From positions 124,001 through 188,000 of IMG/VR virus record IMGVR_UViG_3300034117_001294: 64,000 bases of DNA. One strand, 5' to 3'. Below are positions 2,430 through 51,203 of this stretch, piece after piece (position 1 is the first letter of the stretch; each line of letters starts with the position of its first letter). A model generated the notes under the pieces. It worked only from the letters and a program-made list of their open reading frames with translations, searched no databases and was not told where the DNA came from. A program made the position numbers and the translations under genes.

Positions 2430-2505
2430 GCTGCCTTAGCTCAGTTGGTAGAGCACCGGTTTTGTAATCCGAAGGTCGTCAGTTCGATTCCGACAGGCAG
2501 CACCA
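2430..2505 (+). tRNA. tRNA-Thr(TGT)
   Basis: 76-nt cloverleaf: GCTGCCT/AGGCAGC acceptor, GCTC/GAGC D-stem, loop TT-TGT-AA, TTCGATT T-loop, encoded CCA. Confidence 0.9.
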
Positions 2506-2517
2506 ACTAATTAAATT

Positions 2518-3675
2518 ATGAGCCAAAAATTCAGATTCCACATATTGGGCTTGCCCCACACAGTATCCAGTAAAGAATATAATGCCTGTGCTTATACTCA
2601 GAAAGTCGTTAAATTCGGCAAGATGATGAAAGAGCGTGGGCATTATGTTATCCACTACGGACATGAAGACAGCGACCTAGTATGCGACGAGCATGTTACG
2701 GTCACTACAAACAAAGACTTAGAAATTGCTTACGGCAGCTATGACTGGCGTAAAAACTTCTTTAAGTTTGATACAGGCGATCATGCATATCAAACATTCT
2801 ATGCAAATGCTATCCGAGAAATTGGACTACGCAAACAACCTAAAGATTTTATCTTACCATTCTGGGGATCTGGTGTTCGTGCAGTATGTGATGCACACAA
2901 CGACCTAATTGTTGTTGAGCCGGGTATTGGCTACGCAGGAGGTCATTGGGCACGTTGGAAGATCTTTGAAAGCTATGCTATTATGCACGCCTTCTTTGGA
3001 TTACAAAGTGTGGGTACATGTAATCAAGATTGGTATCACGGTGTTGTTCCTAACTACTTTGACCTAGAAGACTTTACCTATGAGCCGGAAAAGAAAGAAG
3101 ATTACTTCCTGTTCTTGGGTCGAGTATATGAAGGCAAAGGAGCACACCTTGCCATTGAAGTGACTAGAAAGATTGGTGCAAAATTAATCATGGCTGGTCA
3201 GAATAACCTGGCATCAATGGGTTACGCAGAAACTCCAAGCCACGTAGAATTTGTAGGGTATGCAGATGTTGAAACTCGTAAGAAATTAATGAGCCGTGCC
3301 AAAGGAGCATTTGTTCCTAGTCTATATACCGAACCGTTTGGTGGTGTGCAAGTAGAGATGTTGTTGAGTGGTACTCCTACTATCACAACAGATTGGGGAT
3401 CATTTACAGAGAACAATGTACACGGTGTCACTGGATATCGTTGCAGAACATTTGATCAGTTTGTTTGGGCCGCTGAAAACATTGATAAGATCGATCCGGC
3501 TGCATGTCGTGCGTTTGGTGAGAACTTTAGCCTAGAACGAGTAGCACCGATGTATGAAGAATACTTCCAGATGGTGTATGATGTGCATAGCGGCAAAGGA
3601 TGGTACCAGGATCACCCAGAAAGAGAAAACCTTGATTGGTTGCGTAAGTACTATCCACCAATGGACAAGAAATGA
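2518..3675 (+). CDS. glycosyltransferase, GT4 / GT-B fold
   Basis: [12 protein letters not shown] and [23 protein letters not shown] (E-x7-E signature). Confidence 0.85.
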
Positions 3676-14740: not shown

Positions 14741-15513
14741 AGAATATTATTTTAATAATGTGTCTTGCCTCTGCGGCAGTTGGATGTACTACAGTTCCTG
14801 AGTCATATTATCCAACAAAGGACACTAACTATCACACTAACGGAATTCCTATTGAGGAAAAGTATGTTTTTAAGGAAGTAAAAAATACTCCAAGGCCAAC
14901 TGTTATCATTGCACACGGGTGTGACGGCACTCAAAATCAGTCCTATAAAGAATGGTTAGTACAAGTTAGTCGTTGGGGTTACAATGGAGTTATGGTAGAT
15001 TCTTTTTTGCCAAGAGGTTTTTCTAACCTCTGTCATAGAGGATATGCAGTTAATCCCGAATTACGGGCATACGATATTGGCAAGTTAGTTGATTATATTA
15101 AAAAACAAACTTGGCATACTGGAAAAATAGCAGTAATAGGATTTAGCCACGGAGGCAGTACTGTGTTAAATCTAGCAAATAACGATCGGGTCAGCGGAGT
15201 AGATGCCGCAATAGCATATTATCCGAGCTGTTACAATAAGTATTTCAATTTTATAGGAAGAGATTGGTCAAGACCACAGTTTCCTGTGCAGATACATTTT
15301 GGAGATAAGGACACATGGACGCCGCCAGAATTATGTACAAATATAGAGAAATATGAATCACACATGTATAAAAATGCCACCCATGCGTTTGATATGAATT
15401 TTCCATCAAGAGTTGCATACGGATATTACATGGAGTATAATTCAGAAGCAGACAGGCTCTCAAGAAAACGAACAAAAGAATTTTTAGATAAAAATTTAGT
15501 TGCAAACAAATAA
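14737..15513 (+). CDS. dienelactone-hydrolase-family alpha/beta hydrolase, lipoprotein
   Basis: AHGCDG, GFSHGG nucleophile elbow, GDKD, ATHAFD; lipobox AVGC. Confidence 0.75.
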
Positions 15514-15528
15514 ACAATCTGCTACAAT
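15500..15528 (+). promoter_or_regulatory. sigma70-type promoter
   Basis: TTGCAA-17 bp-TACAAT. Confidence 0.55.
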
Positions 15529-15544
15529 AAACAAAGGAAAAATT

Positions 15545-16165
15545 ATGCTAGTACCAATGGTAATCGAAAAAACAAGTTCGGGAGAACGTGCATTTGACAT
15601 TTTTAGTCGACTGCTGAACGAACGAATTGTTTTCTTAAATGGTCCAGTTGATGACCATAGTGCCAATTTGATTGTGGCACAGATGCTGCATCTTGAAAGT
15701 CAAGATGCAGCCAAAGACATTCATTTTTACATTAACAGTCCTGGCGGAGTAGTCACCGCTGGACTTAGCATCTACGATGTTATGCAGTTTATCAAACCAG
15801 ATGTCTGCACTTATGTTATGGGACAAGCCTGCTCTATGGGCTCTTTCCTTGCACAAGCAGGTGCCAGGGGTAAACGATTTGTACTTCCAGAGGCTCGAAC
15901 AATGATCCATCGTGTTAGTTCAGGAACACGGGGCACAAGCGGATCAGTTCATGTACAAGATCTGCAATTTGAAGATGCTAAACGTAGTTTTGAAGAATCT
16001 AAACGAGTAAACGAACGGCTGACTCAGCTGTATGTCAAACACAATACTGCTGGGAAAACATACGAAGAAATGTTCGAAACTATGAAGTTTGACACATTTT
16101 TAAGTGCCGCAGAGGCTGTACAGCACGGTCTTGCTGATCAAGTAGTGGAAAATAGACCCGTATAA
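15545..16165 (+). CDS. clpP: ATP-dependent Clp protease proteolytic subunit
   Basis: [38 protein letters not shown] (Ser), MIH (His), D-T-FLSA-EA; ATG at 15545 after AAAGGA. Confidence 0.95.
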
Positions 16166-17328: not shown

Positions 17329-17357
17329 TTGACAGAATAAATATCTGCCTATATAAT
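17329..17357 (+). promoter_or_regulatory. consensus sigma70 promoter
   Basis: TTGACA-17 bp-TATAAT. Confidence 0.85.
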
Positions 17358-17364
17358 AGTTACT

Positions 17365-17412
17365 AGCGGTCTTTAACGACTTTCACCCCGCTTTATAAAT
17401 TCTGCATGTCGT
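17365..17412 (+). ncRNA. candidate preQ1-I-like pseudoknot riboswitch in queD leader
   Basis: P1 AGCGG/CCGCT, loop starting UC and ending CACC, tail UUAUAAA, loop ACGAC pairs with downstream GTCGT. Confidence 0.45.
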
Positions 17413-17443
17413 CAAACTTGCTACCTTACAAAGGAGACTAGAG

Positions 17444-17950
17444 ATGGCAAATCTACAACCCGTACAATATAAGTACACCTCGACAAAAGAGTATCACGAT
17501 GCTTTTCCATGTGCATATCGCCAATGGAGAGCCGATAGTCACTGTAACCTAAATCACGGATACAGTTTTTCAATGAAGTTCTATTTTGGAACTAACGACC
17601 TAGACGTTCGTAATTGGGCGGCTGACTACGGTGGCTTAAAAGAACTTAAAAAAATCTTAGAAGATCAATTTGATCACACTACCCTAGTTAGTGCCGACGA
17701 TCCAGAACTAGAATTCTATAAAGAGATGGAACGCCGTAAGTTAGCAAAGCTAACAATACTGCCAGCATTAGGTTGCGAAGCACTGAGCGATATGCTGTAC
17801 AAGTATGTGAATGGTGTTTACATTCCAGACATGTGGGGTGACGGTGAAAGCAAACGTCTTTGGTGTTATCGTGTAGAAGTACGTGAAACCCAAAGTAACA
17901 TGGCATTCCGTGAAGGTCATCGTGAATGGAATGAAGATCTATTTGCGTAA
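17444..17950 (+). CDS. queD: 6-carboxytetrahydropterin synthase (QueD/PTPS family)
   Basis: HCNLNHGYS, DYGGLKELKKILEDQFDH, GCE, VEVRET. Confidence 0.85.
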   Translation: MANLQPVQYKYTSTKEYHDAFPCAYRQWRADSHCNLNHGYSFSMKFYFGTNDLDVRNWAADYGGLKELKKILEDQFDHTTLVSADDPELEFYKEMERRKLAKLTILPALGCEALSDMLYKYVNGVYIPDMWGDGESKRLWCYRVEVRETQSNMAFREGHREWNEDLFA

Positions 17951-18101
17951 AGTATGGAGACTTTGGGCCAAGGCCCTAGGTGAAAAAATGGGCGATACTG
18001 ATCGAGAAGCTGATCGTATTGCCCTTATTCGTACACTAATTGTATCTGTGTACATGATAACCAATTTGTTCATTATTGCTGGTGTTATTAGACATTGGTG
18101 A
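17931..18101 (+). CDS. small membrane protein
   Basis: MKIYLRKVWRLWAKALGEK... followed by a TM helix. Confidence 0.55.
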   Translation: MKIYLRKVWRLWAKALGEKMGDTDREADRIALIRTLIVSVYMITNLFIIAGVIRHW

Positions 18102-18130
18102 TTGACAATGCTACATAAATCCTGTACAAT
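18102..18130 (+). promoter_or_regulatory. sigma70-type promoter
   Basis: TTGACA-17 bp-TACAAT. Confidence 0.75.
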
Positions 18131-19080: not shown

Positions 19081-19243
19081 TACTAGCCAGGTTGTTACTC
19101 TAGAGGGAGATCCGGAGCATCCTGGAAAATTAATGATGCCTTTCCCTCCTGATCTATTGGCTCAAATGGGGTGGGACTACGGTGATGTACTAGTTTGGAA
19201 AGATTATAACGACAGTGGTTTTTCACTTTCTAAGAAAGAATAA
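19073..19243 (+). CDS. AbrB/SpoVT-like protein (56 aa)
   Basis: GKLMMPFPPDLLAQMGWDYGDVLVW; below the ORF-track cutoff. Confidence 0.55.
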   Translation: MTDTSQVVTLEGDPEHPGKLMMPFPPDLLAQMGWDYGDVLVWKDYNDSGFSLSKKE

Positions 19244-19244
19244 A

Positions 19245-20261
19245 ATGGGTAAGATTGGGTTTGCATGTAAATGGATTGATAATCCTGCACAAATTGACGG
19301 TATTAAGCCTACAGACGATGCTAAACAATACAACACAGGTTCTACTACTGTGGCATGGCTCAAACGTCAAAGCCAACAGGTAGCAGAAGAAAAACTGTGG
19401 GACCTAATGAAAGGCAACATTGAAGCTGTACGCAAACTAGTAGAAAAAGTAGGCACACTTGATGAATCTCTCCGAATGGTACGTATTAGCAGTGATATAC
19501 TTCCTGTCTATACCCAACCTGATTATAGCTACTTTTGGCGTCTACCAGACGTTCGTGCTTATGCGGAAAAGCACTTCGCCCAAGTGGGTGCTTTGGCTCG
19601 CACTAATAACGTTCGCTTGTCATTTCATCCTGGTCAGTTTACTGTGCTGGCTAGTGAAAATCCCGGCATTGTAGAACGTTCAATTGAGGAGTTTGAATAT
19701 CATGTGGATATGGCCCGCTGGATGGGATTCGGTAAGACCTTCCAAGATCTTAAAATCAATGTTCACATCTCGGGTAAACGCGGCCCCGAAGGCATCATTG
19801 ACGCATTGGGAAAGTTATCCCCAGAAGCAAGAAACTGCATCACAATCGAAAACGACGAAAACTGTTGGGGAATCGACTCAAGTATCGAACTCGCAAAACA
19901 TTGTGCCCTCGTACTTGATATACACCACCACTGGATCCGTACAGGAGACTACATTCAAGCCACCGACGATAGATGTCAGCGTGTGATTGAATCGTGGCGT
20001 GGCGTTCGTCCTGTTATTCATTATTCAGTCAGCCGAGAAGATGTGTTAATAGGGCATTGTCCAATTACGTTACCTGATCATGCATTATTGCTAGAGAACG
20101 GCTACAAAAAACAGAAGATGCGAGCACACAGCAACTTCTATTGGAACAAGTCTGTTAATGATTGGGCATTGACTTTTAGAAAAGACTTTGACATTATGTG
20201 CGAGTCTAAAGCTAAAAACCTAGCTTCTAAAACACTGTACGATTACAGTTTAACCAATTAA
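19245..20261 (+). CDS. uvsE: UV-damage endonuclease
   Basis: GKIGFAC, RISSDILP, RLSFHPGQFTVL, INVH, IENDE, LVLDIHHHW, HYS, AH..., DIMCESKAKNLA. Confidence 0.9.
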   Translation: MGKIGFACKWIDNPAQIDGIKPTDDAKQYNTGSTTVAWLKRQSQQVAEEKLWDLMKGNIEAVRKLVEKVGTLDESLRMVRISSDILPVYTQPDYSYFWRLPDVRAYAEKHFAQVGALARTNNVRLSFHPGQFTVLASENPGIVERSIEEFEYHVDMARWMGFGKTFQDLKINVHISGKRGPEGIIDALGKLSPEARNCITIENDENCWGIDSSIELAKHCALVLDIHHHWIRTGDYIQATDDRCQRVIESWRGVRPVIHYSVSREDVLIGHCPITLPDHALLLENGYKKQKMRAHSNFYWNKSVNDWALTFRKDFDIMCESKAKNLASKTLYDYSLTN

Positions 20262-20790: not shown

Positions 20791-23700
20791 ATGCCACTAA
20801 ATCAACAGATTATCAATATCGGTAGCGAACCAAACGATGGAACAGGCGACAGCGTCTATGCAGCTTTTCAGAAAGTTAACTCTAACTTTACAGACATCTA
20901 TACATTGTTAGGTTTTGGTGCTGGATTCAGCTTTTTAAGACTAAAGGAAGCTCCTAGCACATTAAGACCCAATGCTATTTTACAAGTTAACGCAGAAGGT
21001 AATAAATTTCTTAATAAAATTTTAGTAGCTGGCACAGGTATTAACATTGACTTTGTTACAAGTTCAACTGAAATCAGGATCGTTAATACTGCATCTAGCC
21101 TATCAAGTGATAAGAATCCAACACTAGCAGCAGACATCAGCGGTGAGAATGCATTTAGTATCATTAACATGGATAACACAGGTCCACATGCAGATTGGGA
21201 TGCAGTTAGTCGTAAGTGGGTTTATGAGAACTTTGTTAACCGTGACGGTATTACTAGATATGATAACACTAGTGTAAGTGAGAGCATATATGACGGAATG
21301 AGTACGATTCGGGATAATGTTGAATTATTAGTAAGTCCTACAAGTTCTACTCACATTGTTAACAAAGGATATGTTGACGAACTTGTTGACAACAGTGGTT
21401 TTGCAAGTCGCCAAAACTTCTTTGTTAGTTTAAGTGGTGACGATCATCAGTATTCTTTACCTAGCTATAAACGTGGGCGGGCCTTTGCCTATGCATTTAA
21501 AACTGTTAATCGTGCCGCAGAAGCAGCAGAACAATTTATTGCAGCAAGTCAAATTGTACTAGGACCGTACCAAAAAACTGTTTCGATGAGTAACGGCACA
21601 GCAAATCCTGTTGTTACTAACATAACCACTAGTACATTGCTAGACACTAGCTCTTTTGGTATCCGCTTAAGATTAACACTAGATCCAGCTAGTTTTAATA
21701 TTGGATCAGATCCCTTTATTAATAAAAGTATTTTCCCAGGAAACTACATCATTGGTGCAAGCAGTGAAGCAGTAGGTCTAGTTGAAGCTATTACACTCGA
21801 TGACGTGAATGGCTATGAATACTATGATATTACTCCAGTTGATTACGCTAAACCATATCGTATGGCAGTTGAACCAGAGCCGTTCAGCTATAATGCGTAT
21901 GTAACCAGTGGTGGTGAAATTACCGAAGTAGCGTTCTTATTAGACGTAGCAGACAGCATTGACATTCCAGATTTTTGGATTGGTTACAAATTTGTCATCA
22001 CTAATTCTAGTTACGGTGTCATAAGCTATGGATATATTTCTCGAATTATTCAAGAACTAGACGACGATCAAAACGTTAGAGACACTATTGTTGTTGAGTT
22101 TAGAGATGGTCTCGGATTACAAAATGGCGATGTTGTTGACTATGATAAGTGGCACGTCTATGCTGCCGACTTTGAATTAAACGAAGAGCTACAATGGGGC
22201 CAAAAACAGAACAAGAATCAATCTACTATTATGGTAGAGTCGGGTGAGCATAACGATCAATACCCAATTAAGGTTCCGGAAAACTGTTCTATCCGTGGTG
22301 ATGAATTCCGCCGAAGTGTTATTAAACCTGCACCTTTAGAAGGTACAAGACTTCCAGGTATTAGTAGTTCTAAATGGGCTAATACATACTTCTTTAGAGA
22401 TGCCCAAATTGACGGTATTATTGTAACACAATTAAACACTGCAACTGATTATGCAAGTGCAGCAGGTATTACTATCAGCTCAACTGATAATGACTCAGTT
22501 ACACAAACTGTTACTGTTACTGTAGATGCAGGAGTTGTTAGCACCAATTGGATTGGAAAGATTTTCAAAACTACCGGTGCAGTTTCTGCACAAGGTGAAG
22601 TTCGAGCCGTAAGTAGCAATACTTTTGCAGTTTCTCTAGCACAGAACGAAGTTAATTTTGAAAAGAGTGCTTACAATTATACAGTAGGCAATACTATTGC
22701 TTACGGTGCATGGCATATATATGAACCGTTCAAATACGGATATCATTACCTAAGAGATGCTAGTCGTCCAGTTAACACATTAACTACTCAGACTAACAGT
22801 GGTGGTTATAATAATGCCGGTTCTATTCTACTAGACAACCGAGAATTTATCAAAGCAGAATGTATTGGCTTCCTAAATGCTACATACCCTAGTTTTGTAT
22901 TTGATGAAGATAAATGTGCAAGAGACATCGGTATTATTGTTGATTCAATTGCATACGATTTAACTAACGGTGGAAATAATAGAACTATTAATGCAGGCGA
23001 TAGCTATCGAAATGTTGCAGTAGTTAAAGGATCCCAACTAGCAGAGACTGTTGCGGCTATTAACTATATTAACACTATTGGTCAACGAATTATTAAGAAT
23101 CAACAACCTGTTACTTCTTATCAAGCGGTCGAAGATCAAGTGTTCACTGACCCAGTTGGTGGTACACTAGTTAGTAGTGGGTCTGATTTAATCTTAGCAG
23201 ACTTAGTGCAGGCCTGCTCACGCATTGTCAACAACGATCCTGATTTTAATCCTCCCAAGTATAACGATCAAATGGATGTGTTCTTGATGAACGATGCAAC
23301 AATTAATCGATATATTAGTTGTCAAGGACACGGCGGCTTCATGAAAGTACTTGACCCAGACGGTCAAATTCTTGCCAAGTCCCCATATACTCAAACTGCT
23401 TCTAGCTTCTCTAAGAGCAAGAACAGGCACGTATTTGCAGGTGGTATGTTTATTGACGGATTCTCCGGCAATACTAAGATGACTCCTGCTAGCATTACTA
23501 CTGCATCAGGAACAGGCTATCCAGTAAGAATTAATTCAGCATTGACTACTGGCAGCATTGGACGTCCGAGTGTTGTGCCTGGTGAAGGATATATTCGTCC
23601 CCAAGTGCCTTGCTTCTTTGTTCATAGCGGTGTTACATACGAAGTCAGCTTTGTTAGTAACTTTAATCCAACAAACGGTACAGGTAGTTTAAACTTAAAT

Positions 23701-26700
23701 CCGTTACGTCCAGGTGGTATTGCCACTATTACTAATGCAGGAAACATTGCTACAGGATTTAAAGCTAACGCAGGAACAGTACCTGTAAGATTCAGTGCTC
23801 CGACACAGGCAGGTGGTCTAAATGCAACAGGTACTGCGGTGATTGGAGTTTCGGGTAATGTATCTAGTGTTTCTGTATCCTTCCCAGGATCAGGGTATAC
23901 AAACGGATTATTCACGTTCGGAACTACTCAAGGTTGCCCAAATATTGTTATTGGTGGTGCTCGAATTAGTTGGACTAGAAATAGTTCAGGTGCAATTACT
24001 GGTTACGAAATTATCGACGGTGGTGTTGGATACGCAGTTGGCACAGTTATTAATTTCCCAAGTTCCGGTGGTACAAGTGCTGCCGCAACAGTGGCCAGTG
24101 TAGACGGCAATGGTACAATTACTGCAATTACTATTGGAACAGCAGGCAGCGGCTATAATTCAGATCCGGCAGTAACATTTGGTACTGGGTTAGCATATGT
24201 GGCCACAGTTAAACCTGGATTCATTGTTACCGCAGCACATCCTTTACCAAGCGAGATCACATTAATCACAGCTGGTAATAGAAGTATGTTGGCTAACGAC
24301 TTCACACAGATCAACGACTTAGGCTACGGTATTTTTGCAACTAACGGCGGTTTAGTAGAAAACGTTTCCATGTTTACTTACTACTGCTATAGTGCGTACT
24401 ATTCTTTAAATGGTGCTCAATGTCGTAGTATTGCTGGTTCTACTTCCTACGGTCTAAATGGTCTTAAGTCAGAGGGGAGCGATCCAACAGAGGTTCCAAT
24501 TGCAGTTAGAAACAAACGTTCTACTAGCCAGATTGCCACAATTACCGCAGCAGGCACATACACAAACAAAGCTGAAGATGCAACCTTGTATGTAACTGGG
24601 TTGTCTTATGCACCTATTGCACAAAGTCAACTTGAAGTTAACCATAGTGGAACTGTTGTCCTTTATAATGTCAAGAGTGCAGTACAAGATACATTTGATA
24701 GTACCGTGTATTCTCTATCATTAGATGACGGGCAAGGACAGGGACTAAGGGCAGCTATTGCAAACGGTGAGAAAGCCACGTTACGCATATACTACAATCA
24801 AGAATTATTAGATGTAAATGCAGCAACATTAAGCCGTCCTAGTACTGTATTGACTTTAGACGAAGATCCAACATACGTATATCGTGTATTAAAATATTCA
24901 GACCTTGGCGGAGATACTGCACTTGCAGAAAGTGATACTCCTTACAACTATATTAACCTAACTCCGTGGACTGAGAGTAACGGTTTATACAGACAAGGCT
25001 TAGGCAAATTAACAATTACCAGCGGCGGTGCTGGATTTGGTTCGACTACCACAAACTATACTGCAACAATTCCTGCACCAAGTACCGCAGGAACTGCATC
25101 AGTTAATGGCACTGCAACAGATACTGATTTAATTACTATCAGTGGTGCAAGCGGCACTATAATGATAGGTAGTCGTGTAACTTTAACATCTGGTGGTGCT
25201 GATCCTAACGGTGCTGCAACTTATGTAACTTGGGTTAATTCTAGTTCTACACAGATTAGAGTTGACCGAACATGGACATGGCCTAACAGTACTGGCCTAA
25301 CATTCTCCGGAACACAGGCAGTTGGTTACGGCAAGGCTAACAGCAGTGGACAAATTTTTAAAGTTATTTTAACTAATCAGGGTGCAGGCTACGCCGGAAC
25401 CAGTGTTAGTAATATCACGATTACTGGAGGATCTGCCACAGCTACTGTAACAGCTTACCCAGATGGCGAAACTGGTAATAACAGGATCAAAGTTGTAGAC
25501 CTTGACGCAGATGATCAGGCAAGGATAGGTGCGGGATTAACTGCAAGTACTCCTTACTATTATATATTTGGTCATGCAGGTAATTTGTATAAAATTACAG
25601 ATTATATTAACAGCGACGAAACTTATAATGAATGGGGAGAAATTGTTGTTGAGAGAGTTAGTGATGGTGCTACATTACAACATCAAGTTTTGGCTACAGC
25701 ATTAAAAGCAGGTATTACATCTAATCAACCGGGTGATATTACTGTACGTATTTCTACAATGCGTGTTACCGGACACGACATGTTGAACGTAGGTACAGGA
25801 GGCTATGCTGACAGTAAGTATCCAAACGATTTATACGGCCCTCCAAGCAATCCTCCAGACTCGGCATTAGAAACTCAAGAGGTAGGAAAAGGTCGTGTAT
25901 ACTATGCCACTACTGACCAAGACGGTAACTTTAAAGTTGGTAAGTTCTTCAGCGTAGACCAAGGTCGCGGTACTGTGAGTATCAGTGCTCCGATTAGTTT
26001 AACTAACGTTGATGGCATTAGCTTTAAACGTGGGCAGACTCTTGTACAGGTGTTTAGCGTAGACGGTACGTTAGGCGGCAACAGTAATAACAGCGTTCCA
26101 ACTGAACGTGCTATACAAACATATGTTAATAGTAGATTAGGCCTAAACAGAAACAATACTACCGCAGGTGTCAGTCCAATCGGTAATGGATTCTTAGATC
26201 GTGGCGGCGTTTTAGAAATGCTCGATACTATCAAGATGGGCGACAACCGTATTGTTAATATGGCCGATCCAGCAGCTGATAAAGATGCTGTTAACAGACA
26301 ATGGGCTAACCTAAACTATATCAATACCAGTGGCGACACTATGGTAGGTACGTTAGTTACTCAAAAGTTAGAACCTAGTGCTAACTTAACATACGACATT
26401 GGTGAAAATGGCAAGCGATACGTTAATGTCTATGCGAACAGATTCCAAGGTACTGCAACTACTGCACAGAGCTTAGATGCTGCGGTAACTATTCAACTTA
26501 GCGGTGATGTTACTGGTAGTGCTAGTTTCTCTGGTGCAGGTGGTATCAACATTGTGACTACTATATCAAACAATAGTGTTGCATTAGGTACTGATACAAC
26601 TGGAGATTATGTATCTACTGGTGCAACTAGCGGATATGGTCTAAGCGGTAGCACAACAGGAGAAACTCAAACATTCACCGTTACTTCAAACGGTACAAGT

Positions 26701-27276
26701 TCTAATAGTGCAAGTACACTGGTCTTTAGAGACGGTAGTGGCAATTTTAGTGCAGGGACCGTTACTGCAACATTTAGCGGTAACATAACCGGTACTCCGA
26801 CTGTTCCGAGCATCACAAAGAGCGGCACTAACGGAACTGGCGACATTGGTCAAAGTGATAACTTGTTTGGAACAGTTTATGGCACTGCTTACTATGCAAA
26901 ATACGGTGACTTGGCAGAAAAATATTTGCCAGATGCACATTATGAGCCAGGTACTGTTGTAGTATTTGGCGGTGCAAAAGAAGTTACTGCTGCGGTAGAA
27001 TTCATGGACCGCAGGATCGCCGGCGTGGTTGCAACTAATCCGGCGTTCAAAATGAATGCCGAACTAGAAGGTGGCGTCTTTATTGCACTTACTGGTCGTG
27101 TTCCATGTAAAGTTGTAGGTAAAGTACGCAAAGGCGATATGTTAATTTCTAGTGGTGCTCCGGGTGTTGCAACTGCTGAAAAGAATCCTGCAATGGGTTC
27201 AGTAATTGGCAAAGCATTAGAAGATTATGATAGTCAAACAATTGGCGTCATTGAAGTTGTAGTAGGGAGAATTTAA
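20791..27276 (+). CDS. giant tail-fibre/baseplate protein with C-terminal intramolecular chaperone
   Basis: N-terminal INIGSEPNDGTGD (T4 gp9/gp10-like), beta-helix-like IRGDEFRRS segment, KCARDIG..VD repeat, GSGY repeats, C-terminal YGDLAEKY...GRVPCKV. Confidence 0.75.
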   Translation: MPLNQQIINIGSEPNDGTGDSVYAAFQKVNSNFTDIYTLLGFGAGFSFLRLKEAPSTLRPNAILQVNAEGNKFLNKILVAGTGINIDFVTSSTEIRIVNTASSLSSDKNPTLAADISGENAFSIINMDNTGPHADWDAVSRKWVYENFVNRDGITRYDNTSVSESIYDGMSTIRDNVELLVSPTSSTHIVNKGYVDELVDNSGFASRQNFFVSLSGDDHQYSLPSYKRGRAFAYAFKTVNRAAEAAEQFIAASQIVLGPYQKTVSMSNGTANPVVTNITTSTLLDTSSFGIRLRLTLDPASFNIGSDPFINKSIFPGNYIIGASSEAVGLVEAITLDDVNGYEYYDITPVDYAKPYRMAVEPEPFSYNAYVTSGGEITEVAFLLDVADSIDIPDFWIGYKFVITNSSYGVISYGYISRIIQELDDDQNVRDTIVVEFRDGLGLQNGDVVDYDKWHVYAADFELNEELQWGQKQNKNQSTIMVESGEHNDQYPIKVPENCSIRGDEFRRSVIKPAPLEGTRLPGISSSKWANTYFFRDAQIDGIIVTQLNTATDYASAAGITISSTDNDSVTQTVTVTVDAGVVSTNWIGKIFKTTGAVSAQGEVRAVSSNTFAVSLAQNEVNFEKSAYNYTVGNTIAYGAWHIYEPFKYGYHYLRDASRPVNTLTTQTNSGGYNNAGSILLDNREFIKAECIGFLNATYPSFVFDEDKCARDIGIIVDSIAYDLTNGGNNRTINAGDSYRNVAVVKGSQLAETVAAINYINTIGQRIIKNQQPVTSYQAVEDQVFTDPVGGTLVSSGSDLILADLVQACSRIVNNDPDFNPPKYNDQMDVFLMNDATINRYISCQGHGGFMKVLDPDGQILAKSPYTQTASSFSKSKNRHVFAGGMFIDGFSGNTKMTPASITTASGTGYPVRINSALTTGSIGRPSVVPGEGYIRPQVPCFFVHSGVTYEVSFVSNFNPTNGTGSLNLNPLRPGGIATITNAGNIATGFKANAGTVPVRFSAPTQAGGLNATGTAVIGVSGNVSSVSVSFPGSGYTNGLFTFGTTQGCPNIVIGGARISWTRNSSGAITGYEIIDGGVGYAVGTVINFPSSGGTSAAATVASVDGNGTITAITIGTAGSGYNSDPAVTFGTGLAYVATVKPGFIVTAAHPLPSEITLITAGNRSMLANDFTQINDLGYGIFATNGGLVENVSMFTYYCYSAYYSLNGAQCRSIAGSTSYGLNGLKSEGSDPTEVPIAVRNKRSTSQIATITAAGTYTNKAEDATLYVTGLSYAPIAQSQLEVNHSGTVVLYNVKSAVQDTFDSTVYSLSLDDGQGQGLRAAIANGEKATLRIYYNQELLDVNAATLSRPSTVLTLDEDPTYVYRVLKYSDLGGDTALAESDTPYNYINLTPWTESNGLYRQGLGKLTITSGGAGFGSTTTNYTATIPAPSTAGTASVNGTATDTDLITISGASGTIMIGSRVTLTSGGADPNGAATYVTWVNSSSTQIRVDRTWTWPNSTGLTFSGTQAVGYGKANSSGQIFKVILTNQGAGYAGTSVSNITITGGSATATVTAYPDGETGNNRIKVVDLDADDQARIGAGLTASTPYYYIFGHAGNLYKITDYINSDETYNEWGEIVVERVSDGATLQHQVLATALKAGITSNQPGDITVRISTMRVTGHDMLNVGTGGYADSKYPNDLYGPPSNPPDSALETQEVGKGRVYYATTDQDGNFKVGKFFSVDQGRGTVSISAPISLTNVDGISFKRGQTLVQVFSVDGTLGGNSNNSVPTERAIQTYVNSRLGLNRNNTTAGVSPIGNGFLDRGGVLEMLDTIKMGDNRIVNMADPAADKDAVNRQWANLNYINTSGDTMVGTLVTQKLEPSANLTYDIGENGKRYVNVYANRFQGTATTAQSLDAAVTIQLSGDVTGSASFSGAGGINIVTTISNNSVALGTDTTGDYVSTGATSGYGLSGSTTGETQTFTVTSNGTSSNSASTLVFRDGSGNFSAGTVTATFSGNITGTPTVPSITKSGTNGTGDIGQSDNLFGTVYGTAYYAKYGDLAEKYLPDAHYEPGTVVVFGGAKEVTAAVEFMDRRIAGVVATNPAFKMNAELEGGVFIALTGRVPCKVVGKVRKGDMLISSGAPGVATAEKNPAMGSVIGKALEDYDSQTIGVIEVVVGRI

Positions 27277-27801: not shown

Positions 27802-30531
27802 ATGACAGCACCAGTATGGATTACCAATGCGGGGTTCCTGGGCACGTTAACAGAACGAACTGCTATTAATATACCATTTTCAGTTGAAGGCACTGGATCT
27901 ACATTCAGTGTTATAAGCGGGAAGCTTCCGGACGGAATGGTTTTACAATTAGTAACTACTGCTACGTCGACTACTACAACTGGGTTTATTATTGGAAACC
28001 CTATGAGCGTGCCTTCTACAATTAGAAGTCAATTTGTAGTTCGTGCAAAAAATGCACAGGGTGTAGCTGACCGTACGTTTTCAGTAGATGTAACTAGCAA
28101 TCAAGATCCAGTATGGGTAACTCCTAGCGGATTCCTAGCAGTAGGAACCAGTGGTGAGTGTTTTGCAGTAAACGAACATATTGTAGATTATCAATTGTCT
28201 GCTGTAGCTAATGTCTTGTTTGAAAATATGAAACTAAGATATTACATTGCAGACGGAGACGGGCAACTACCCAAAGGGATTAAATTAACTGAAGACGGTA
28301 GATTAACTGGCGTTATTGATGAAATAACTGTGCAAGAAGAGCCGGTTGGAGTTTCAGGCAACGGATACGACACTGAAAAATATGACCGTTATCCGTATGA
28401 TAGTGCTTTCATTATTGAAAATAAAACTAATCGTCCAAAATACATTAAGAAAATTTATCAATTCTATGTAACTGCCACTGACAGTTTTAATAGCAGTCGT
28501 AAATTATTTAAATTGCAAGTTGTTGATGTAAACAGCTTACGTGCAGACACTGGGTATATTTCAGCAGATGCAAGATGTTTTCAAGCAGGCGACAGTTACT
28601 TGTATGCACCTGCTTGGCTAAGTCCGGCGAACTTGGGTATTCGTCGTGCCGCGAACTATCAAATTGTTAGAATACAAACATATGATCCGCACCCTGAACT
28701 AGGTGCAGTTAATTGGATCTGGGATAATATTAGTGTAAATCCGGAAGTACGAGCTATTGCTGATACTCAGTACAATACAGGACCAAGTGGCTTACCTGTA
28801 ACTGTAAGAGGTGTAGTTGATACGTTTGCTGAGTTACCGTTAGTTAATACCATCGGTGATTTGTACAATGTAGTAGATGAAACTGTTAGCTATGTGTGGA
28901 ACGGAACGGATTGGGAAAGTGCAGACTTCTTACCTAAGTATAACCGTGCTGGTATGAGTGAGGTGCATTTAAAGAGCTTGTCTAGCTTGCCTCAAGTTGG
29001 ACAATTGCTTAGATTGGACACATATGTGCCCGATGCAATATACGATACTACTTATACAATCAGTTCAGTGACAGGAACTACTTCAACTTGTGTAGTTGGT
29101 ATTAAACATAGTCCAGTACTTGTAGGCGATACGGTAGTATATGACACTACACTAAGAGACGACATTCCAGATAATACTATTCTATTCGTTGGAAGTGAGA
29201 GTCAAAAGCCGCCCGGATTTAATTTAAATGAAACGTCTGGAGACCTATACGGACAAATTCCGTACATACCTGCATATAGTGAAGATTACAAATTTACTAT
29301 TAGGATGATTAAAACTGATCCTAAGACCGGAGATCAAAGTAAAAGCGATAGAGTATTTCAATTAAGACTACAAGGCAGTGTAAACACTGATTTACAATGG
29401 ATTACTACCTCTACCGTAGGAACAATTGCAGCAGGATATCAAAGTGAGCTATCAGTAGTAGCACAACATGAAAATTTACCCGACTTAGGAATTCAATACA
29501 GATTTGTACAAGGTGAATTACCTGCAGGTTTAGAATTTAAGAATGACGGAAGTATTGTGGGGAAAATTCCTTATGGTGGAACTACTGAAGTTGATTACTA
29601 CCAACCTACAGAATTTACCATCGATGGTGGCGGAACTACATTTGACCGTGCATATACGTTTACAGTAGAAGCTACTAATGCCTATCGACTGGCAACAATT
29701 GATCAAGAGTTTACAATTCTTATTGGAGACAACGATCCAACTCCGTTTAGCAGCGTGTACATGAGACCGTTCATGGCACGACATAGAAGAAAAGTCTATA
29801 GAGATTTTATTAACAATAGAGATGTATTCGATCCAAAGGTATTATACCGACCATCGGATCCAGCATTCGGGCTACAAAAAGATATTCGAATGACTTTAGA
29901 GTACGGCATTGAGCGATTAAACTTAGCTGAATACGTTTTAGGGCTACAGAATTATTTCTACAATAAGAGATTCTATTTTGGAGATGTCAAGACAATTCCT
30001 GCAGAAGACGCTCAAGGAAATTATGTTTACGACTTTGTCTACGTTGACATTATTGACAGCCAAAGTAATACATTAGGGAAAAGTCCGGATAATATCAGTT
30101 TCTTGATTAATCAGGGACTGGTTAATTTATACAGTAATAGCGTTGAAAACTGGCAAAAGAGTCTAGAAAGCGTTCAAATATACGGCGAAACTATTAAAGT
30201 AGACGAATATTTACGTCCTAGATTTATGAGTACTATTCAACAGGCAACTGGAGCACCTTTAGGATTTATTAAAGCGATGCCAATTTGTTATGCATTACCC
30301 GGCGAAGGCTATAAAATTAAAAGAAAGATTGAGCTTAATGGATTTGACTTTAAGTTAATTGATTTCGAAGTTGATAGATTAATTATTGATCAAACACTAG
30401 ATTACAGTGGCGATAAATATCTCAAGTTCCCAATTAAGAATGTTGATGATGTACAACCATTAAATGTGCTGGCTGGTCCAGACGGTATCATTATTACTGA
30501 CTCTGATGGAAACGCACTACTAGTTGAATAA
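27802..30531 (+). CDS. baseplate wedge-like protein with Ig-like repeats
   Basis: Repeated P-x-W-(I/V)T...G.L and SG.LP.G...G.(I/L).G motifs. Confidence 0.6.
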   Translation: MTAPVWITNAGFLGTLTERTAINIPFSVEGTGSTFSVISGKLPDGMVLQLVTTATSTTTTGFIIGNPMSVPSTIRSQFVVRAKNAQGVADRTFSVDVTSNQDPVWVTPSGFLAVGTSGECFAVNEHIVDYQLSAVANVLFENMKLRYYIADGDGQLPKGIKLTEDGRLTGVIDEITVQEEPVGVSGNGYDTEKYDRYPYDSAFIIENKTNRPKYIKKIYQFYVTATDSFNSSRKLFKLQVVDVNSLRADTGYISADARCFQAGDSYLYAPAWLSPANLGIRRAANYQIVRIQTYDPHPELGAVNWIWDNISVNPEVRAIADTQYNTGPSGLPVTVRGVVDTFAELPLVNTIGDLYNVVDETVSYVWNGTDWESADFLPKYNRAGMSEVHLKSLSSLPQVGQLLRLDTYVPDAIYDTTYTISSVTGTTSTCVVGIKHSPVLVGDTVVYDTTLRDDIPDNTILFVGSESQKPPGFNLNETSGDLYGQIPYIPAYSEDYKFTIRMIKTDPKTGDQSKSDRVFQLRLQGSVNTDLQWITTSTVGTIAAGYQSELSVVAQHENLPDLGIQYRFVQGELPAGLEFKNDGSIVGKIPYGGTTEVDYYQPTEFTIDGGGTTFDRAYTFTVEATNAYRLATIDQEFTILIGDNDPTPFSSVYMRPFMARHRRKVYRDFINNRDVFDPKVLYRPSDPAFGLQKDIRMTLEYGIERLNLAEYVLGLQNYFYNKRFYFGDVKTIPAEDAQGNYVYDFVYVDIIDSQSNTLGKSPDNISFLINQGLVNLYSNSVENWQKSLESVQIYGETIKVDEYLRPRFMSTIQQATGAPLGFIKAMPICYALPGEGYKIKRKIELNGFDFKLIDFEVDRLIIDQTLDYSGDKYLKFPIKNVDDVQPLNVLAGPDGIIITDSDGNALLVE

Positions 30532-30534
30532 AAG

Positions 30535-33072
30535 ATGAGCACAATAAGTAATTTACCACCGTTAAACACACTAACCAATGCTGTTCTGATACCAGTAGCG
30601 GATACTTCTACCAGACAAACATACTATGTAACTGTAGAAACATTAGGAACATTTTTTAGTAGAGAAACTGCGGTAGGTGCTAGCGGAGCCACTGGACCGA
30701 TTGGTCTACGAGGTGCCACAGGCAGCGGATCAACTGGTGCTACGGGGCAAGGTGGTTCAACTGGATCTACTGGTCCAAAAGGTGATATTGGCTATCCCGG
30801 AGGAACTGGTGCTACTGGTCCGCAAGGTATCCCAGGTACTGCTGCATTTATGGGTGCAACTGGTGCAACCGGAAGTCAAGGGCCTGCTGGTAGTGCAGGT
30901 GCTACAGGTAGTGCAGGTGCTACTGGTAGCGGTGCTACTGGTTCTACAGGTGCCCAAGGTGCAACCGGTGAACAAGGTGCAACCGGTCTCCAGGGTATTC
31001 CCGGAATAGCAGCATTCCAAGGCGGTACTGGTTCCACTGGTCAACAAGGTATTCCCGGCCAAGGCGGTACAGGTGCAACTGGTGCTCAAGGATCAACAGG
31101 TTCTACAGGACCCCAAGGTGCTACTGGTATTGCTGGAACATTTGCAGGTCAAGGCGGTACGGGTTCAACTGGACCAATTGGTTCAACTGGTGCTACAGGC
31201 GAAGGTGCTACAGGTGCAACAGGGGAAATTGGTCAGCCATTTGTTATTGATGCTGTAGGGTATTGGCCAACTCCGTACGACGAACGAAGTCAATATGATG
31301 ATCGTCCGTTTGGTTTTGCATTTTTAGAACTAGGTACCGGAACATTATACATTAAACAAAACGGAGATGGTAACTGGAGTGCAGGTGCACCATTTGGCGG
31401 TGCAGGTGCAACTGGTGCTACTGGACAAGGAACTACAGGTGCAACTGGTATAGGCAGTCCGGGTGCTACTGGACCAGTTGGCGGAACTGGGGCTACTGGC
31501 AATTTTGGTGCAACTGGTGCTACTGGCATTCAAGGACCGACTGGCGACTTAGGTACAACAGGTGCAACTGGTCCGTTAGGATCAACAGGTGCTACAGGTA
31601 ACTTTGGTGCTACTGGTGCTACCGGACTCCGAGGTGCTACAGGTGCAACTGGTCCGCAAGGATCAACTGGATTAGGTGCTACAGGTGCAACCGGAGCAGA
31701 CGGTGCTACCGGTCCAGACGGTGCTACTGGTTCAACTGGACCAATTGGCGGTGACGGTGCTACCGGTGCAACTGGTATTCAAGGCGAGTTAGGCTCAACT
31801 GGTGCTACAGGCATTGGTTCAACTGGTGCCACAGGTGCTACTGGTAACCAAGGAGAGCCGGGTGCTACAGGTGCTACAGGACAAGGTGCTACAGGTGCAA
31901 CAGGTGCCATTGGAGCAACAGGTGCAACAGGTGCTACTGGATTACAAGGCAGCACAGGTGCAACTGGCCCGTTAGGAACTACAGGTGCAACCGGTGCAAC
32001 CGGTGCTACTGGTCCTGCAGGTGCTACTGGTTCAGAAGGTCCAAGTATACCGGGAACTACAGGTGCGACAGGTGCGACAGGGCCGGCTGGGGCTACCGGA
32101 GCAGTCGGTTTACAAGGCAGTGAAGGAGCATCTGGTGCTACTGGTGCAACTGGTCCTCAAGGCAAATATATTACCACTGCTACATTAACTTCTAGCAATA
32201 CAATAATTGAATTTACATTAAGCGATGCTTCCGTAATAAGTGTTGGTCCAATAACCGGTGCTACTGGTCCTAGTGGGGCTACAGGTGCAACTGGAGCAGA
32301 AGGTGTAATGGGTGCTACTGGTGCTACTGGAATAGGATCAACAGGTGCGACCGGAGCAACTGGTGCAACTGGATCAATGGGAGCAACTGGTCCACAAGGA
32401 GATATCGGACTTCCAGGAAGTACAGGATCAACTGGTTTGTGGGGGTCTACTGGGCCTGCTGGATATGATGGTGCCACAGGTGCCACAGGTGCTCAAGGAT
32501 CATCGGGTGCAACTGGTGCTCAAGGATCAACTGGTGCCACTGGATTAACTGGTGCTACTGGTTCGAGTAATGCACAGGCCGCAGCTTTAGAAATTGTGCC
32601 TTATGCAGGCGGATTTACATACTATGCTAAAGGATATGAAGATAATATTACTGCTACTATTGTTGCAAGAGATGACCTAGGTGATATTAGAGGATCGTTC
32701 TTTAGAGGAACTGCTACTGTTGCAGTGTATGCTGACTTGGCAGAAAAATATCTAACAGACCGAGAATACTCAGTCGGTACTGTGATGACAGTTGGTGGCA
32801 TTGCAGAAGTTACCGCGGTAACAACTAGTGACTGTTATGTTATCGGTGTAGTCTCCGGTAAGCCTGCATATATGATGAATAGTGAATTAGAAGGCGGAAC
32901 ATATATTGCGTTAACTGGTCGTGTACCAGTTAAAGTAGAAGGGTACGTGTTAAAAGGCGAACCTATTTGGCCGTACATGGATGGCAAAGGCAGTACAACT
33001 AGCAATGGCCGACAACCATTTGCATTTGCATTAGAAAACGGTTCAGGCATTGTGGAGTGTTTAGTTAAATGA
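30535..33072 (+). CDS. collagen-like fibre with C-terminal chaperone domain
   Basis: Long Gly-X-Thr repeats; C-terminal YADLAEKY...GRVPVKV. Confidence 0.8.
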
Positions 33073-36017
33073 GTACCATTAGTAATCTACCCGTTATTGG
33101 TTCAATAACAACGGCAACTAGTATGCCTGTTGCTGACGGCAACCTAACTAAACAGATGACTGTAGGGCAGTTAGGCGAATTCATTAATAATGAATTAGTC
33201 ACATTCAATGTGTCAACGGCAACTACTAGCACTATTGGCGGAATTAAAATTGGCGATGGTTTAAATATTGACCAAGAAGGATTTTTAAATGTAACAACTG
33301 TTGCTACTACTGCAACTACTTCTACTCTAGGAACAATTATAGTAGGCGACGGTTTAGAAATTGTTGAAGGTGTAGTCAATGTAGTTTCAATGGGTGCAAC
33401 TGGTGCTCGGGGTGCAACTGGCACTAGAGGATCGACTGGTGCAACTGGTCCTAGACTGACCGCAGTAATTTCAACTTCAAGACCATCGGTGGCAGCGGCT
33501 GGGGACATGTGGCTTGATACTCAAGAAACAGGACAACTGTTTACTTACAACGGTTCTGTTTGGGTATCAGCAAGTCCTGGTGGTGCTGTTGGAGAAACGG
33601 GAGCAACTGGTTCAGTCGGTGCTACGGGTGCAACTGGGTATCAGGGTGCCACCGGTGCTACCGGATTTACTGGCGGGCCAGGTGCTACAGGCTTAACCGG
33701 TGCAACTGGTGCCCAAGGCATTCCTGGCACATTTGCAGGTCAAGGGTCTACTGGTGCAAGCGGATTGCCGGGCGTAGACGGTGCAACTGGTGCAACTGGT
33801 AGTGGTAGCACAGGTGCAACCGGAGTTGGTTTCATTCCTTTGTATTCTCAAACTACTGCAACTATCAGTTTAAACACTGTAACTTTCGTAACTCATTTAT
33901 CGTCTAGTACTGTAGCGTATACAGTAAGTTCTAGAGTAAGGGCTACTGCGGACGCTGATATTTTATCAAACTTTGACGGCATTGTTGAAAGTTTTATTGG
34001 AGATCAGCTCACTATTAGACCGTTAACTAGCTTTGGTGCAGGAACATTCCAAGCATGGACTATAACATTAGTCGGCGGACAAGGTGCTAGAGGTTCTACA
34101 GGACCGGATGGTGCTACCGGAGCAACGGGTATTGGATCTACTGGTGCTACCGGTGCTACTGGACCTCAAGGTGCTACTGGTGCAGGTGCTACAGGTGCTC
34201 AGGGAGAAATTGGATCTACTGGTGCTACCGGTGCTACTGGACTTCAAGGGGCAACAGGTAGTGGTAGTACAGGTGCTACAGGAAATATTGGATCAACTGG
34301 TGCTACAGGTGCTACAGGTGCAACTGGGCCAGTTGGTTCAACAGGTGCTACAGGTGCTACAGGTGCTACTGGTCCTCAAGGTGCTACTGGGCCCCAAGGC
34401 ATTCCTGGAACGTTTGCAGGTCAAGGAGCAACAGGTGCTCAGGGAGAAATTGGATCTACTGGTGCAACTGGATTGCAAGGCGGCACAGGTTCTACTGGAC
34501 CTCAAGGATCTGAAGGAAATATTGGTGCTACTGGTGCTCAGGGATCAACTGGTGCAACCGGAGCAGGTGCAACTGGAGCGACAGGTGCTATTGGAGCAAC
34601 AGGTGCTACTGGTGCTACTGGTCCAGCAGGTGCTACAGGATCTGGTGCTACAGGTGCAACCGGTGCACAGGGTGCTACAGGCCCACAGGGACAAAACGGT
34701 GCCACCGGTCAAGGTGCTTCAGGTTCAACTGGACCGCAAGGTGATCAAGGATCAACAGGAGCAACCGGATTAACAGGTTCAACTGGTCTGGGTGCCACAG
34801 GTTCAACTGGTGCAACTGGATTCATCGGTGCTACAGGTGCCGTTGGTGAGTTCGGTAGTACAGGTGCTACAGGTATTCAAGGCACTACCGGAGCGTTTGG
34901 AGCAACAGGTGCTACAGGACCGACTGGAACTAGAGGATCAACAGGGGCTACTGGCCCAGCAGGTGCTACTGGTAGTGGTTCTACCGGTGCTACAGGTGCA
35001 GCCGGACAGTTTGGGTCTACTGGGGCTACAGGGCAATGGGGATCTACTGGTGCTACTGGTCTATGGGGATCTACTGGTGCCACTGGTCCAACAGGATCAA
35101 CTGGACCTGGATACCTACAACTAATTTCTACATCAACTACCTTAGTTATAACTACCAGTACTTCGACTTTTGTATTTCAAGTTGATAAAGCATACGGAAC
35201 TAATGCGTATACAACATCAACTCGTGTTCGTGCAGTGGCATTTACCAGTACTGCATTTAGCACAGTTATTGACGGCTACGTTGAATGGTATACTGGCACT
35301 AATATAGGTATTGCTCCATATACCATTAACGGGCCGGGAACATTTAAAGATTGGTCTATTAGTCTTACTGGTGCAAGAGGATTTCAAGGATTTACAGGTG
35401 CCACTGGTCCTGCTGGTGCAACAGGTGCAATTGCAAATCCATTAAGTAGCGTCTTTACAATTACAAATACTACCAGTGCAACTTCAACAAACTCTGGTGC
35501 TCTACAAGTTGTAGGTGGTGCTGGCATTGGCGGAAACTTACATGTTGGCGGAAATATTTCAGTCAATAATAGTCAGGCTGTAAACGGCCCTGCATTCTCA
35601 GTTTATCCAGACTCGGGAGTAACGCAGACAATTACTTCTGGAACACAACAAAAAGTGTTGTTCCAACTTGAAGATTTTGACACTAATGGAAATTTTGCCA
35701 GTTCAAGATTTACGCCCACTGTTGCAGGTTATTATCAACTAAATGCCGCAGTTCGCATAAGCGGTACTATGGGTACTGGTGAAAGCATGTTAGTTATTTG
35801 GAAAAATGGATCAGAGTATAAGCGTGGTTGGAATGCAAGTGGCACAGAAGTAGGTGCTAGTTTCTTTAGCATGGGCGTAAGCACTATAGCTTATGCTAAC
35901 GGAACTGGAGATTATTTTGAAGTCTATATTCAACAGACTAGCGGCAGCAGTAAAGATATTACCGTTGCTGGCGGAAACATTACATGGTTTAACGGCTGCA
36001 TGATGCGTGGTGCGTAA
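33069..36017 (+). CDS. collagen-like fibre with C1q-like head
   Basis: GAT/GST repeats; C-terminal PAFSVY...KVLFQ.EDFDT...[10 protein letters not shown]. Confidence 0.8.
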
Positions 36018-36038
36018 TTAGAAATATAGGAATACACA

Positions 36039-36872: not shown

Positions 36873-36875
36873 GGA

Positions 36876-51195: not shown

Positions 51196-51203
51196 ATATT
51201 ACT

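Follow-up and report, generated by a model that had tools for sequence, protein, structure and literature searches.

A conserved pseudoknot in the leader of phage queD genes is a candidate preQ1-I-like riboswitch

Class I preQ1 (preQ1-I; Rfam RF00522) riboswitches are small H-type pseudoknots associated with queuosine/7-deazaguanine biosynthesis genes. According to a 2024 review of the family, they are defined by the H-type fold, a G-C pair closing P1 as the floor of the ligand pocket, a strictly conserved specificity C directly before the P1 3′ strand (preceded by U in type I), a U in loop 1 (U6) that reads the ligand edge, an A of loop 3 that reads the ligand and, in translational members, Shine-Dalgarno (SD) nucleotides inside P2, so that ligand binding represses (PMC11625349). 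Members bind preQ1 or preQ0 with high affinity, and their A-rich loop 3 docks in the P1 minor groove. The preQ1-II (RF01054) and preQ1-III (RF02680) riboswitches share the que gene context and a conserved cytosine that reads the ligand, but are HLout pseudoknots of about 80-100 nt with an extra hairpin and a different pocket. Riboswitch classes are normally found in cellular genomes and only secondarily in phages. Phage genomes do carry cis-regulatory structured RNAs (PMC9004378), such as the glutamine/glnA RNA of marine phages, PhotoRC and others, and these are copies of cellular classes. The T4 gene 32 mRNA leader also contains a pseudoknot that controls translation, but it is an autogenous operator that binds a protein rather than a small molecule.

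The window analysed here is a 64,000-nt stretch of the 228-kb IMG/VR contig IMGVR_UViG_3300034117_001294, part of an uncultured phage found in many lake-water metagenomes. All of its long ORFs lie on the + strand and its GC content is about 0.40. A search of isolated phages returned no close relative, the only DNA matches being short cyanophage stretches and the best QueD protein identity being 53% or less. A tail-fibre-like ORF ends at 17324 and the next ORF, beginning at 17444, encodes a QueD-like protein that matches Pfam PF01242 (5.7e-14) and PHROG 2389 (3.4e-35), and for which NCBIfam TIGR03367 (QueD) is the best match, although below its cutoff (30 against 89 bits). A first-pass annotation of the leader between them had proposed a perfect sigma-70 promoter with a transcription start near A17365, a 5-bp P1 and a 5-bp loop-tail pairing (ACGAC/GUCGU, 17376-17380 with 17408-17412) forming a pseudoknot that resembles preQ1-I but has a longer loop and tail. 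Each of these sequence features is present as described, and the comparison with relatives reported below strengthens the observation considerably. After refinement, the features of the locus, in window coordinates, are as follows.

17329-17357, + strand: sigma-70-type promoter, TTGACA (17329-17334), 17-nt spacer, TATAAT (17352-17357), with the predicted start at about 17364-17365, the first base of P1
17365-17369, + strand: P1 5′ strand, AGCGG
17370-17375, + strand: loop 1, UCUUUA
17376-17382, + strand: P2 5′ strand, ACGACUU, pairing with 17406-17412 (U17381.U17407 is a mismatch)
17383-17385, + strand: U17383, a mismatch opposite C17405, then the P2 extension 5′ strand C17384 and A17385, pairing with G17404 and U17403
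17386-17387, + strand: two-nucleotide junction, C17387 being the invariant C directly before the P1 3′ strand and the candidate ligand-pairing base
17388-17392, + strand: P1 3′ strand, CCGCU
17393-17402, + strand: loop 3, UUAUAAAUUC
17403-17405, + strand: P2 extension 3′ strand U17403 and G17404, and C17405
17406-17412, + strand: P2 3′ strand, AUGUCGU, the putative switching strand shared by the pseudoknot and the alternative helix
17407-17413, + strand: 5′ strand, UGUCGUC, of the predicted alternative helix that would sequester the ribosome-binding site (RBS)
17424-17434, + strand: predicted small inner hairpin, CCUU (17424-17427) with AAGG (17431-17434), covering the 5′ half of the SD
17433-17436, + strand: SD core GGAG, within AAGGAG (17431-17436), 8 nt before the AUG
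17443-17449, + strand: 3′ strand, GAUGGCA, of the predicted alternative helix, containing the start codon (17444-17446) and codon 2
17444-17950, + strand: the presumed regulated gene, a QueD-like 6-carboxy-tetrahydropterin / 6-pyruvoyl-tetrahydropterin synthase family protein of 168 aa

The promoter is a 12/12 consensus match and the best site in the region, and equivalent promoters end 4-10 nt before P1 in 17 of 21 type B and 16 of 48 type A leaders of relatives (the leader types are described below). The transcription start remains an inference from sequence, as metatranscriptome contigs cover only fragments, include promoter sequence from relatives and yielded no evidence on the start site or on expression.

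In the single sequence the fold is unremarkable: the nested minimum free energy structure has a z-score of -0.54, nested folding cannot see a pseudoknot and 5-bp stems are common, so that on this sequence alone the two pairings could be a chance resemblance without function. To test this, relatives were collected by a protein search with the window's QueD, and 80 viral loci at 85-100% identity were fetched out of more than 600 matches in IMG/VR. The element was found directly before the gene in 78 of the 80, the other two being cut off upstream, while the sequence further upstream, including the promoter and the neighbouring gene, differs from locus to locus. In a second protein-based sample, fetched with a QueD subfamily only about 38% identical to that of the window, the element was found in 70 of 78 loci and gave the same statistics. 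Overall, the element precedes QueD homologs of 32-100% identity in more than 250 viral contigs, one copy per locus, and is present in hundreds of lake-water phages.

In a gap-free comparison anchored on the conserved flanks, P1 was always paired, with pair types that include AGCGG/CCGCU, UGCGG/CCGCA, AGUGG/CCACU, AUCGG/CCGAU, ACCGG/CCGGU, AGAGG/CCUCU and UCCGG/CCGGA. P2 types include ACGAC/GUCGU, GGCAU/AUGCC, GGCG/CGCC, GGUG/CACC and GACGC/GUGUC, and the leaders' own tails paired better than in any of 2000 re-dealings of tails among leaders. On a covariance model alignment of 100 distinct sequences, P1 was 100% paired, with compensatory changes at its outer three pairs (AU/UA; GC/CG/UA; CG/UA/AU) and the inner two G-C pairs invariant in 100 of 100 sequences, while P2 was 84.5% paired, with compensatory changes at all five pairs (for example GGCG/CGCC to GGUG/CACC). 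In total, 92.6% of cells were paired and eight of ten pairs showed double-sided changes, compared to 30-56% paired (35-55% in another summary of the same controls) when the partner was slid by 1-3 columns, and 0 of 500 shuffles reached the observed values. Many of the sequences are related, so the shuffle tests overstate significance; on the other hand, the MAFFT and covariance model alignments put short P2 3′ strands out of register, so these P2 counts are conservative. Covariation among homologous leaders had been set beforehand as a test of the proposed structure, and it is clearly present. Chance resemblance is excluded by these comparative data.

The comparison also refined the structure. 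A divergent subgroup (the locus designated L262 and its relatives) changes the conserved UCAUC of the original "loop 2" to UAAUC and at the same time changes the otherwise invariant UCUGC at the end of "loop 3" to UCUUC, while another locus, L034, changes UCAUC to UCGUC together with UCUGC to UCCGC. These two independent compensatory changes (CA/UG to AA/UU, and A-U to G-C) support two further base pairs that continue P2 across the U.C mismatch, which explains the otherwise invariant UCUGC, and no unpaired cells occurred at these pairs among sequences with a 5-nt segment. The 48-nt candidate aptamer (17365-17412) therefore has a junction of only 2 nt and a loop 3 of 10 nt, and most of the extra nucleotides in the longer loop and tail of the first-pass annotation are paired. 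The unpaired nucleotides are highly conserved. On 160 leaders, loop 1, which is variable in length, has C at position 2 in 158 and U at position 3 in 158, whereas position 1 is U in 60, A in 44 and C in 56. Loop 3 is A-rich and of fixed length, with invariant A at positions 3, 5 and 7 and invariant U and C at positions 9 and 10. The junction C is present in all leaders, including those found by protein or covariance model searches that do not force it, and the position before it is U in most relatives. A correlation of loop-1 length with P2 length was not informative.

A covariance model found a single copy in the window at 57.8 bits, the next hit scoring 11.7 bits, and one copy per locus in 70 related loci, always before queD, the only second occurrence being a truncated P1-only remnant in one locus (L062). 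A degenerate pattern scan of IMG/VR returned at least 120 loci, in which the motif precedes QueD homologs of 32-98% identity to the window protein. In three loci one extra gene lies between the motif and queD, namely a cupin, a CmoB-like methyltransferase and an unknown. The same pattern in one genome for each of 185,579 bacterial and archaeal species gave 27 matches, of which 22 are chance matches inside genes and five lie on short MAG contigs of 4-8 kb, each time before queD. The element therefore appears to be phage-specific, and no chromosomal bacterial example was found in this set, in contrast to the phage-borne copies of cellular riboswitch classes mentioned above.

In relatives, folE often lies 0.5-6 kb upstream and a QueE-like radical-SAM gene 0.5-8 kb downstream, and in 23 loci a xanthine/guanine-type phosphoribosyltransferase directly follows queD. 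Within the roughly 1-14 kb of flank examined, queC was seen once and tgt/dpdA never. In the window itself queD stands alone: Pfam searches of about 60 ORFs and tblastn with phage FolE, QueE, QueC and TGT returned no folE, queE, queC or tgt/dpdA homolog in the 64 kb.

Rfam 15 at gathering thresholds found only a tRNA in the window. Permissive scans of five leaders gave only sub-threshold preQ1-I alignments and noise hits such as miRNA and lncRNA: the window leader gave no preQ1 hit at E<=10, the related leaders L029 and L172 scored 12.8 and 9.8 bits with RF00522 against a gathering score of 39, and the related leaders L018 and L110 gave none. RF00522 was nevertheless the only riboswitch model that aligned to the candidate aptamer, over P1, GGU-C, UCCC and the A-rich tail. 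A preQ1-II hit in L029 (18.1 bits against 47) covered only unpaired model ends over the unstructured SD region, and no meaningful structural alignment to preQ1-II or preQ1-III was obtained.

Compared with preQ1-I, especially type I (for example that of Carnobacterium antarcticum), the element is likewise a small H-type pseudoknot (about 35-50 nt in both) with a 5-bp P1 closed by an invariant G-C pair, a P2 formed with the 3′ tail and an invariant C directly before the P1 3′ strand, which in most relatives is part of the UC dinucleotide that is the type I signature (PMC11625349). It is similarly linked to a 7-deazaguanine pathway gene and, by inference, to translational control, and its A-rich loop 3 is compatible with that of preQ1-I. 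It differs in that the first loop-1 nucleotide, equivalent to U6, is variable and followed by a nearly invariant CU, P2 is much longer (7-10 layers, including the conserved CA/UG segment and the U.C mismatch), loop 3 carries an invariant YUC, and the SD is not in P2 but starts 9-30 nt (median 21) after the UCUGC. We therefore do not file the element as a member of RF00522 but describe it as a preQ1-I-like variant, or possibly a separate class. Literature searches found no description of this motif.

No intrinsic terminator follows the pseudoknot, which fits control of translation. The leaders fall into four expression-platform types, and in each RNAalifold found a helix between the P2 3′ strand plus 2-4 following nucleotides and the RBS: GUC.UC with GGAGAC or UGUCGU with AUGGCA in type A, to which the window belongs; GYCAUUG with CAAUGGC in type B; CCUAUG with CAUAGG in type C; and UGUC with GACA elsewhere. 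In the window, this helix (17407-17413 with 17443-17449) is contained in both the minimum free energy and centroid folds at -9.0 kcal/mol, against -5.8 for P2, and encloses the predicted CCUU/AAGG hairpin over the SD; similar CYUU...AAAGG pairings are visible in type A leaders. The duplex energy with a leader's own partner was -8.0 kcal/mol, compared to -4.4 for shuffled partners and -6.1 for partners from another type, and the own partner was better in 130 of 160 leaders. Of 78 non-type-C leaders, 63 have 6/6 complementarity between NNNC(A/G)U after the UCUGC and the AUG plus codon 2, although covariation of this helix is modest (81% fully complementary, against 73% when partners are re-dealt) and its independent variation limited. 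Codon 2 covaries with P2 in a three-way fashion (P2 5′ strand/P2 3′ strand/start region: GGCA/UGCC/AUGGCA, GGUA/UACC/AUGGUA and GACUU/AAGUC/AUGACUU), such that the P2 5′ strand mimics the start region.

Blocking only the five nucleotides of the P2 3′ strand raised predicted RBS accessibility, from 0.09 to 0.37 for the SD and from 0.00 to 0.36 for the AUG in the window, and from 0.02 to 0.34 (type A) and 0.01 to 0.49 (type B) for the AUG, with a similar effect in the remaining "other" leaders, though such gains arise partly by construction. In type C leaders, the SD was freed (0.30 to 0.78) but predicted AUG accessibility fell (0.83 to 0.28), and in 36 of 160 leaders the summed SD and AUG accessibility dropped by more than 0.1. 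In addition, 58 of 71 type C leaders carry a TGnTAWAAT element in the hairpin loop, between the pseudoknot and the SD, and none has a promoter next to P1; these leaders may use a second, internal promoter that bypasses the aptamer.

The leader (17365-17443) thus has the general attributes of a riboswitch at the sequence level, namely a conserved, covarying structure in the 5′ UTR of functionally coherent genes with an expression platform that overlaps it. With moderate confidence, we favor the view that it is a candidate riboswitch of a kind not yet catalogued, probably acting as a translational ON switch. In this view, loop 3 is expected to lie in the P1 groove and, by analogy with class I preQ1 aptamers, a guanine-faced ligand would stack between P1 and P2 and pair with C17387. 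The ligand could be a 7-deazaguanine such as preQ1, preQ0 or CDG, perhaps with a feed-forward role, or a pterin such as the QueD substrate, which has the same 2-amino-4-oxo face as guanine. Without ligand, the alternative helix would hide the start-codon region or, in other leader types, the SD; with ligand, the P2 3′ strand would be captured in the pseudoknot and queD translation turned on. The same logic, in which ligand binding captures a strand that otherwise sequesters the expression signal of a metabolic gene, operates in the substrate- or precursor-sensing ZTP, PRPP and adenine (add) riboswitches, whose folds and ligands are unrelated. The pseudoknot and its covariation, its exclusive link to queD, its apparent restriction to phage contigs and the competing helix rest directly on the sequence comparisons, whereas the binding of any small molecule, the identity of that molecule, its effect on queD expression and the direction of the switch are inferred.

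The first-pass interpretation, a phage-borne variant riboswitch sensing preQ0, preQ1 or a related deazaguanine to tune precursor supply, is therefore supported only in part. A constrained, riboswitch-like pseudoknot tied to queD and sharing core preQ1-I features is upheld, but classical end-product feedback, in which ligand binding lowers queD expression, appears unlikely, since the P2 3′ strand is itself complementary to the SD or start codon in all leader types, the SD lies outside P2, no terminator is present and no element was found that would sequester the RBS only in the bound state. An OFF switch nonetheless remains possible: its architecture and key nucleotides resemble preQ1-I, all known members of which repress, the gene belongs to the 7-deazaguanine pathway, AUG accessibility falls in type C leaders upon capture of the P2 3′ strand, and a folded pseudoknot 20-30 nt upstream of the AUG could hinder 30S standby binding. 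An ON switch on a biosynthetic gene is also not the usual feedback logic, and no natural ON preQ1 riboswitch is known to us.

It is also possible, though unlikely, that the pseudoknot is a translational operator bound by QueD itself or another phage protein, which would shift the balance between the pseudoknot and the sequestering helix as in T4 gene 32 autoregulation. This would explain the exclusive link to queD across very divergent subfamilies and the apparent restriction to phages, and conserved single-stranded nucleotides could equally be protein contacts. However, the conserved G-C floor and the C before the P1 3′ strand match features that form the preQ1-I ligand pocket, with which the A-rich loop 3 is compatible, the motif is nearly unchanged before QueD proteins only 32-40% identical, which makes a co-evolving protein-RNA interface less likely, and it stays at the head of the operon when another gene is inserted. 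The T4 gene 32 pseudoknot shows no sequence or loop similarity to this element. Even less likely is a structure that needs no ligand, such as a translational enhancer or standby site, an mRNA-stabilizing 5′ structure, or an RNA thermometer whose balance of folds depends on temperature or on translation of the upstream gene. The pseudoknot does begin at the predicted 5′ end of the transcript in type A and B leaders, and two competing folds of similar stability (-5.8 and -9.0 kcal/mol) could respond to temperature, but the near-invariance of about 15 unpaired nucleotides and the fixed loop 3 length go beyond what a simple stabilizer or thermometer needs, and the strict link to one enzyme family would be left unexplained.

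A more speculative possibility, which we regard as tentative, is a riboswitch class that exists only in viruses, a preQ1-I-like pseudoknot re-wired as a translational ON switch. It would sense a 7-deazapurine or pterin intermediate, for example the QueD substrate dihydroneopterin triphosphate made by the phage FolE, or CDG/preQ0, and would thereby license translation of the first committed enzyme of a phage 7-deazaguanine pathway, which in many relatives runs FolE-QueD-QueE-purine phosphoribosyltransferase. The element is abundant, given the more than 600 QueD loci of this group in IMG/VR, and at about 48 nt it is small enough for immediate biochemical and structural work. It would extend the preQ1 family with a longer P2, a different loop 1 and, if the ON logic holds, a mode of control not known for this family. 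It also gives a handle on how phages regulate 7-deazaguanine synthesis, the pathway behind the DNA modifications that protect phage DNA from restriction, and its ligand specificity could reveal which intermediate these phages monitor.

Other genes and signals noticed in the window are listed here.
2430-2502 (+), a tRNA gene.
2534-3140, a glycosyltransferase gene.
15500-16165, 50362-53974 and 45425-46165 (-), a proteostasis-like gene set (ClpP-like protease, DnaJ, peptide deformylase and a ClpB-like AAA+ protein of 771 aa) together with PhoH on the minus strand.
17883-18101 (+), a small ORF (PHROG 1679) overlapping the 3′ end of queD.
18102-18130, a second near-consensus promoter (TTGACA-17-TACAAT, 11/12).
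19215-20261, UvdE.
20791-27276 and 55542-60350, two very large ORFs of 2161 and 1602 aa.
30000-38000, a block of higher GC (0.45-0.48) encoding 845-982-aa proteins, a collagen-repeat protein and a subtilase.

The tRNA gene was the only hit in the window at the Rfam gathering level. The glycosyltransferase gene is 75% identical at the DNA level to Synechococcus phage S-CAM7, and this was the only megablast hit of the first 25 kb to any isolated phage. The DNA of the small ORF overlapping the 3′ end of queD is about 70% identical to cyanophage genes annotated as “Rnf-like,” and the second near-consensus promoter follows at 18102-18130.

Among the related viral loci, one (L062) carries a truncated copy of the motif at 2217-2242, about 640 nt upstream of the complete copy, which has the P1 hairpin and loop but lacks the A-rich loop 3 and the UCUGC, and which sits behind its own TATAAT and in front of a different small ORF. 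In the type C leaders, one of the expression-platform types found among the relatives, 58 of 71 carry a TGnTAWAAT (extended -10-like) sequence in the loop of the hairpin between the aptamer and the SD, for example at 2960-2990 in the relative L029, while none of the 71 has a sigma-70-like promoter next to P1. This sequence may be an internal promoter giving an aptamer-free queD transcript.

The only “genome” hits of the motif were short contigs binned into freshwater MAGs, four of them binned as Bacteroidota (L094, L098, L105 and L114) and one as Nitrospira (L110). As these contigs look like phage fragments, the bins probably contain viral contamination, or else they hint at the hosts.

In many related phages, queD is flanked by folE upstream and a QueE-like radical-SAM gene downstream, and in 23 loci a xanthine/guanine-type phosphoribosyltransferase directly follows queD (relatives include L177:389-934(-), L180:4338-5198(+) and L169:1246-1947(+)). 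Within the fetched flanks, queC was seen once and tgt/dpdA never. The combination of FolE-QueD-QueE with a phosphoribosyltransferase recalls, by analogy alone, the start of deazapurine nucleoside pathways of the tubercidin/toyocamycin type, and hints at nucleotide-level rather than DpdA-type 7-deazapurine chemistry.
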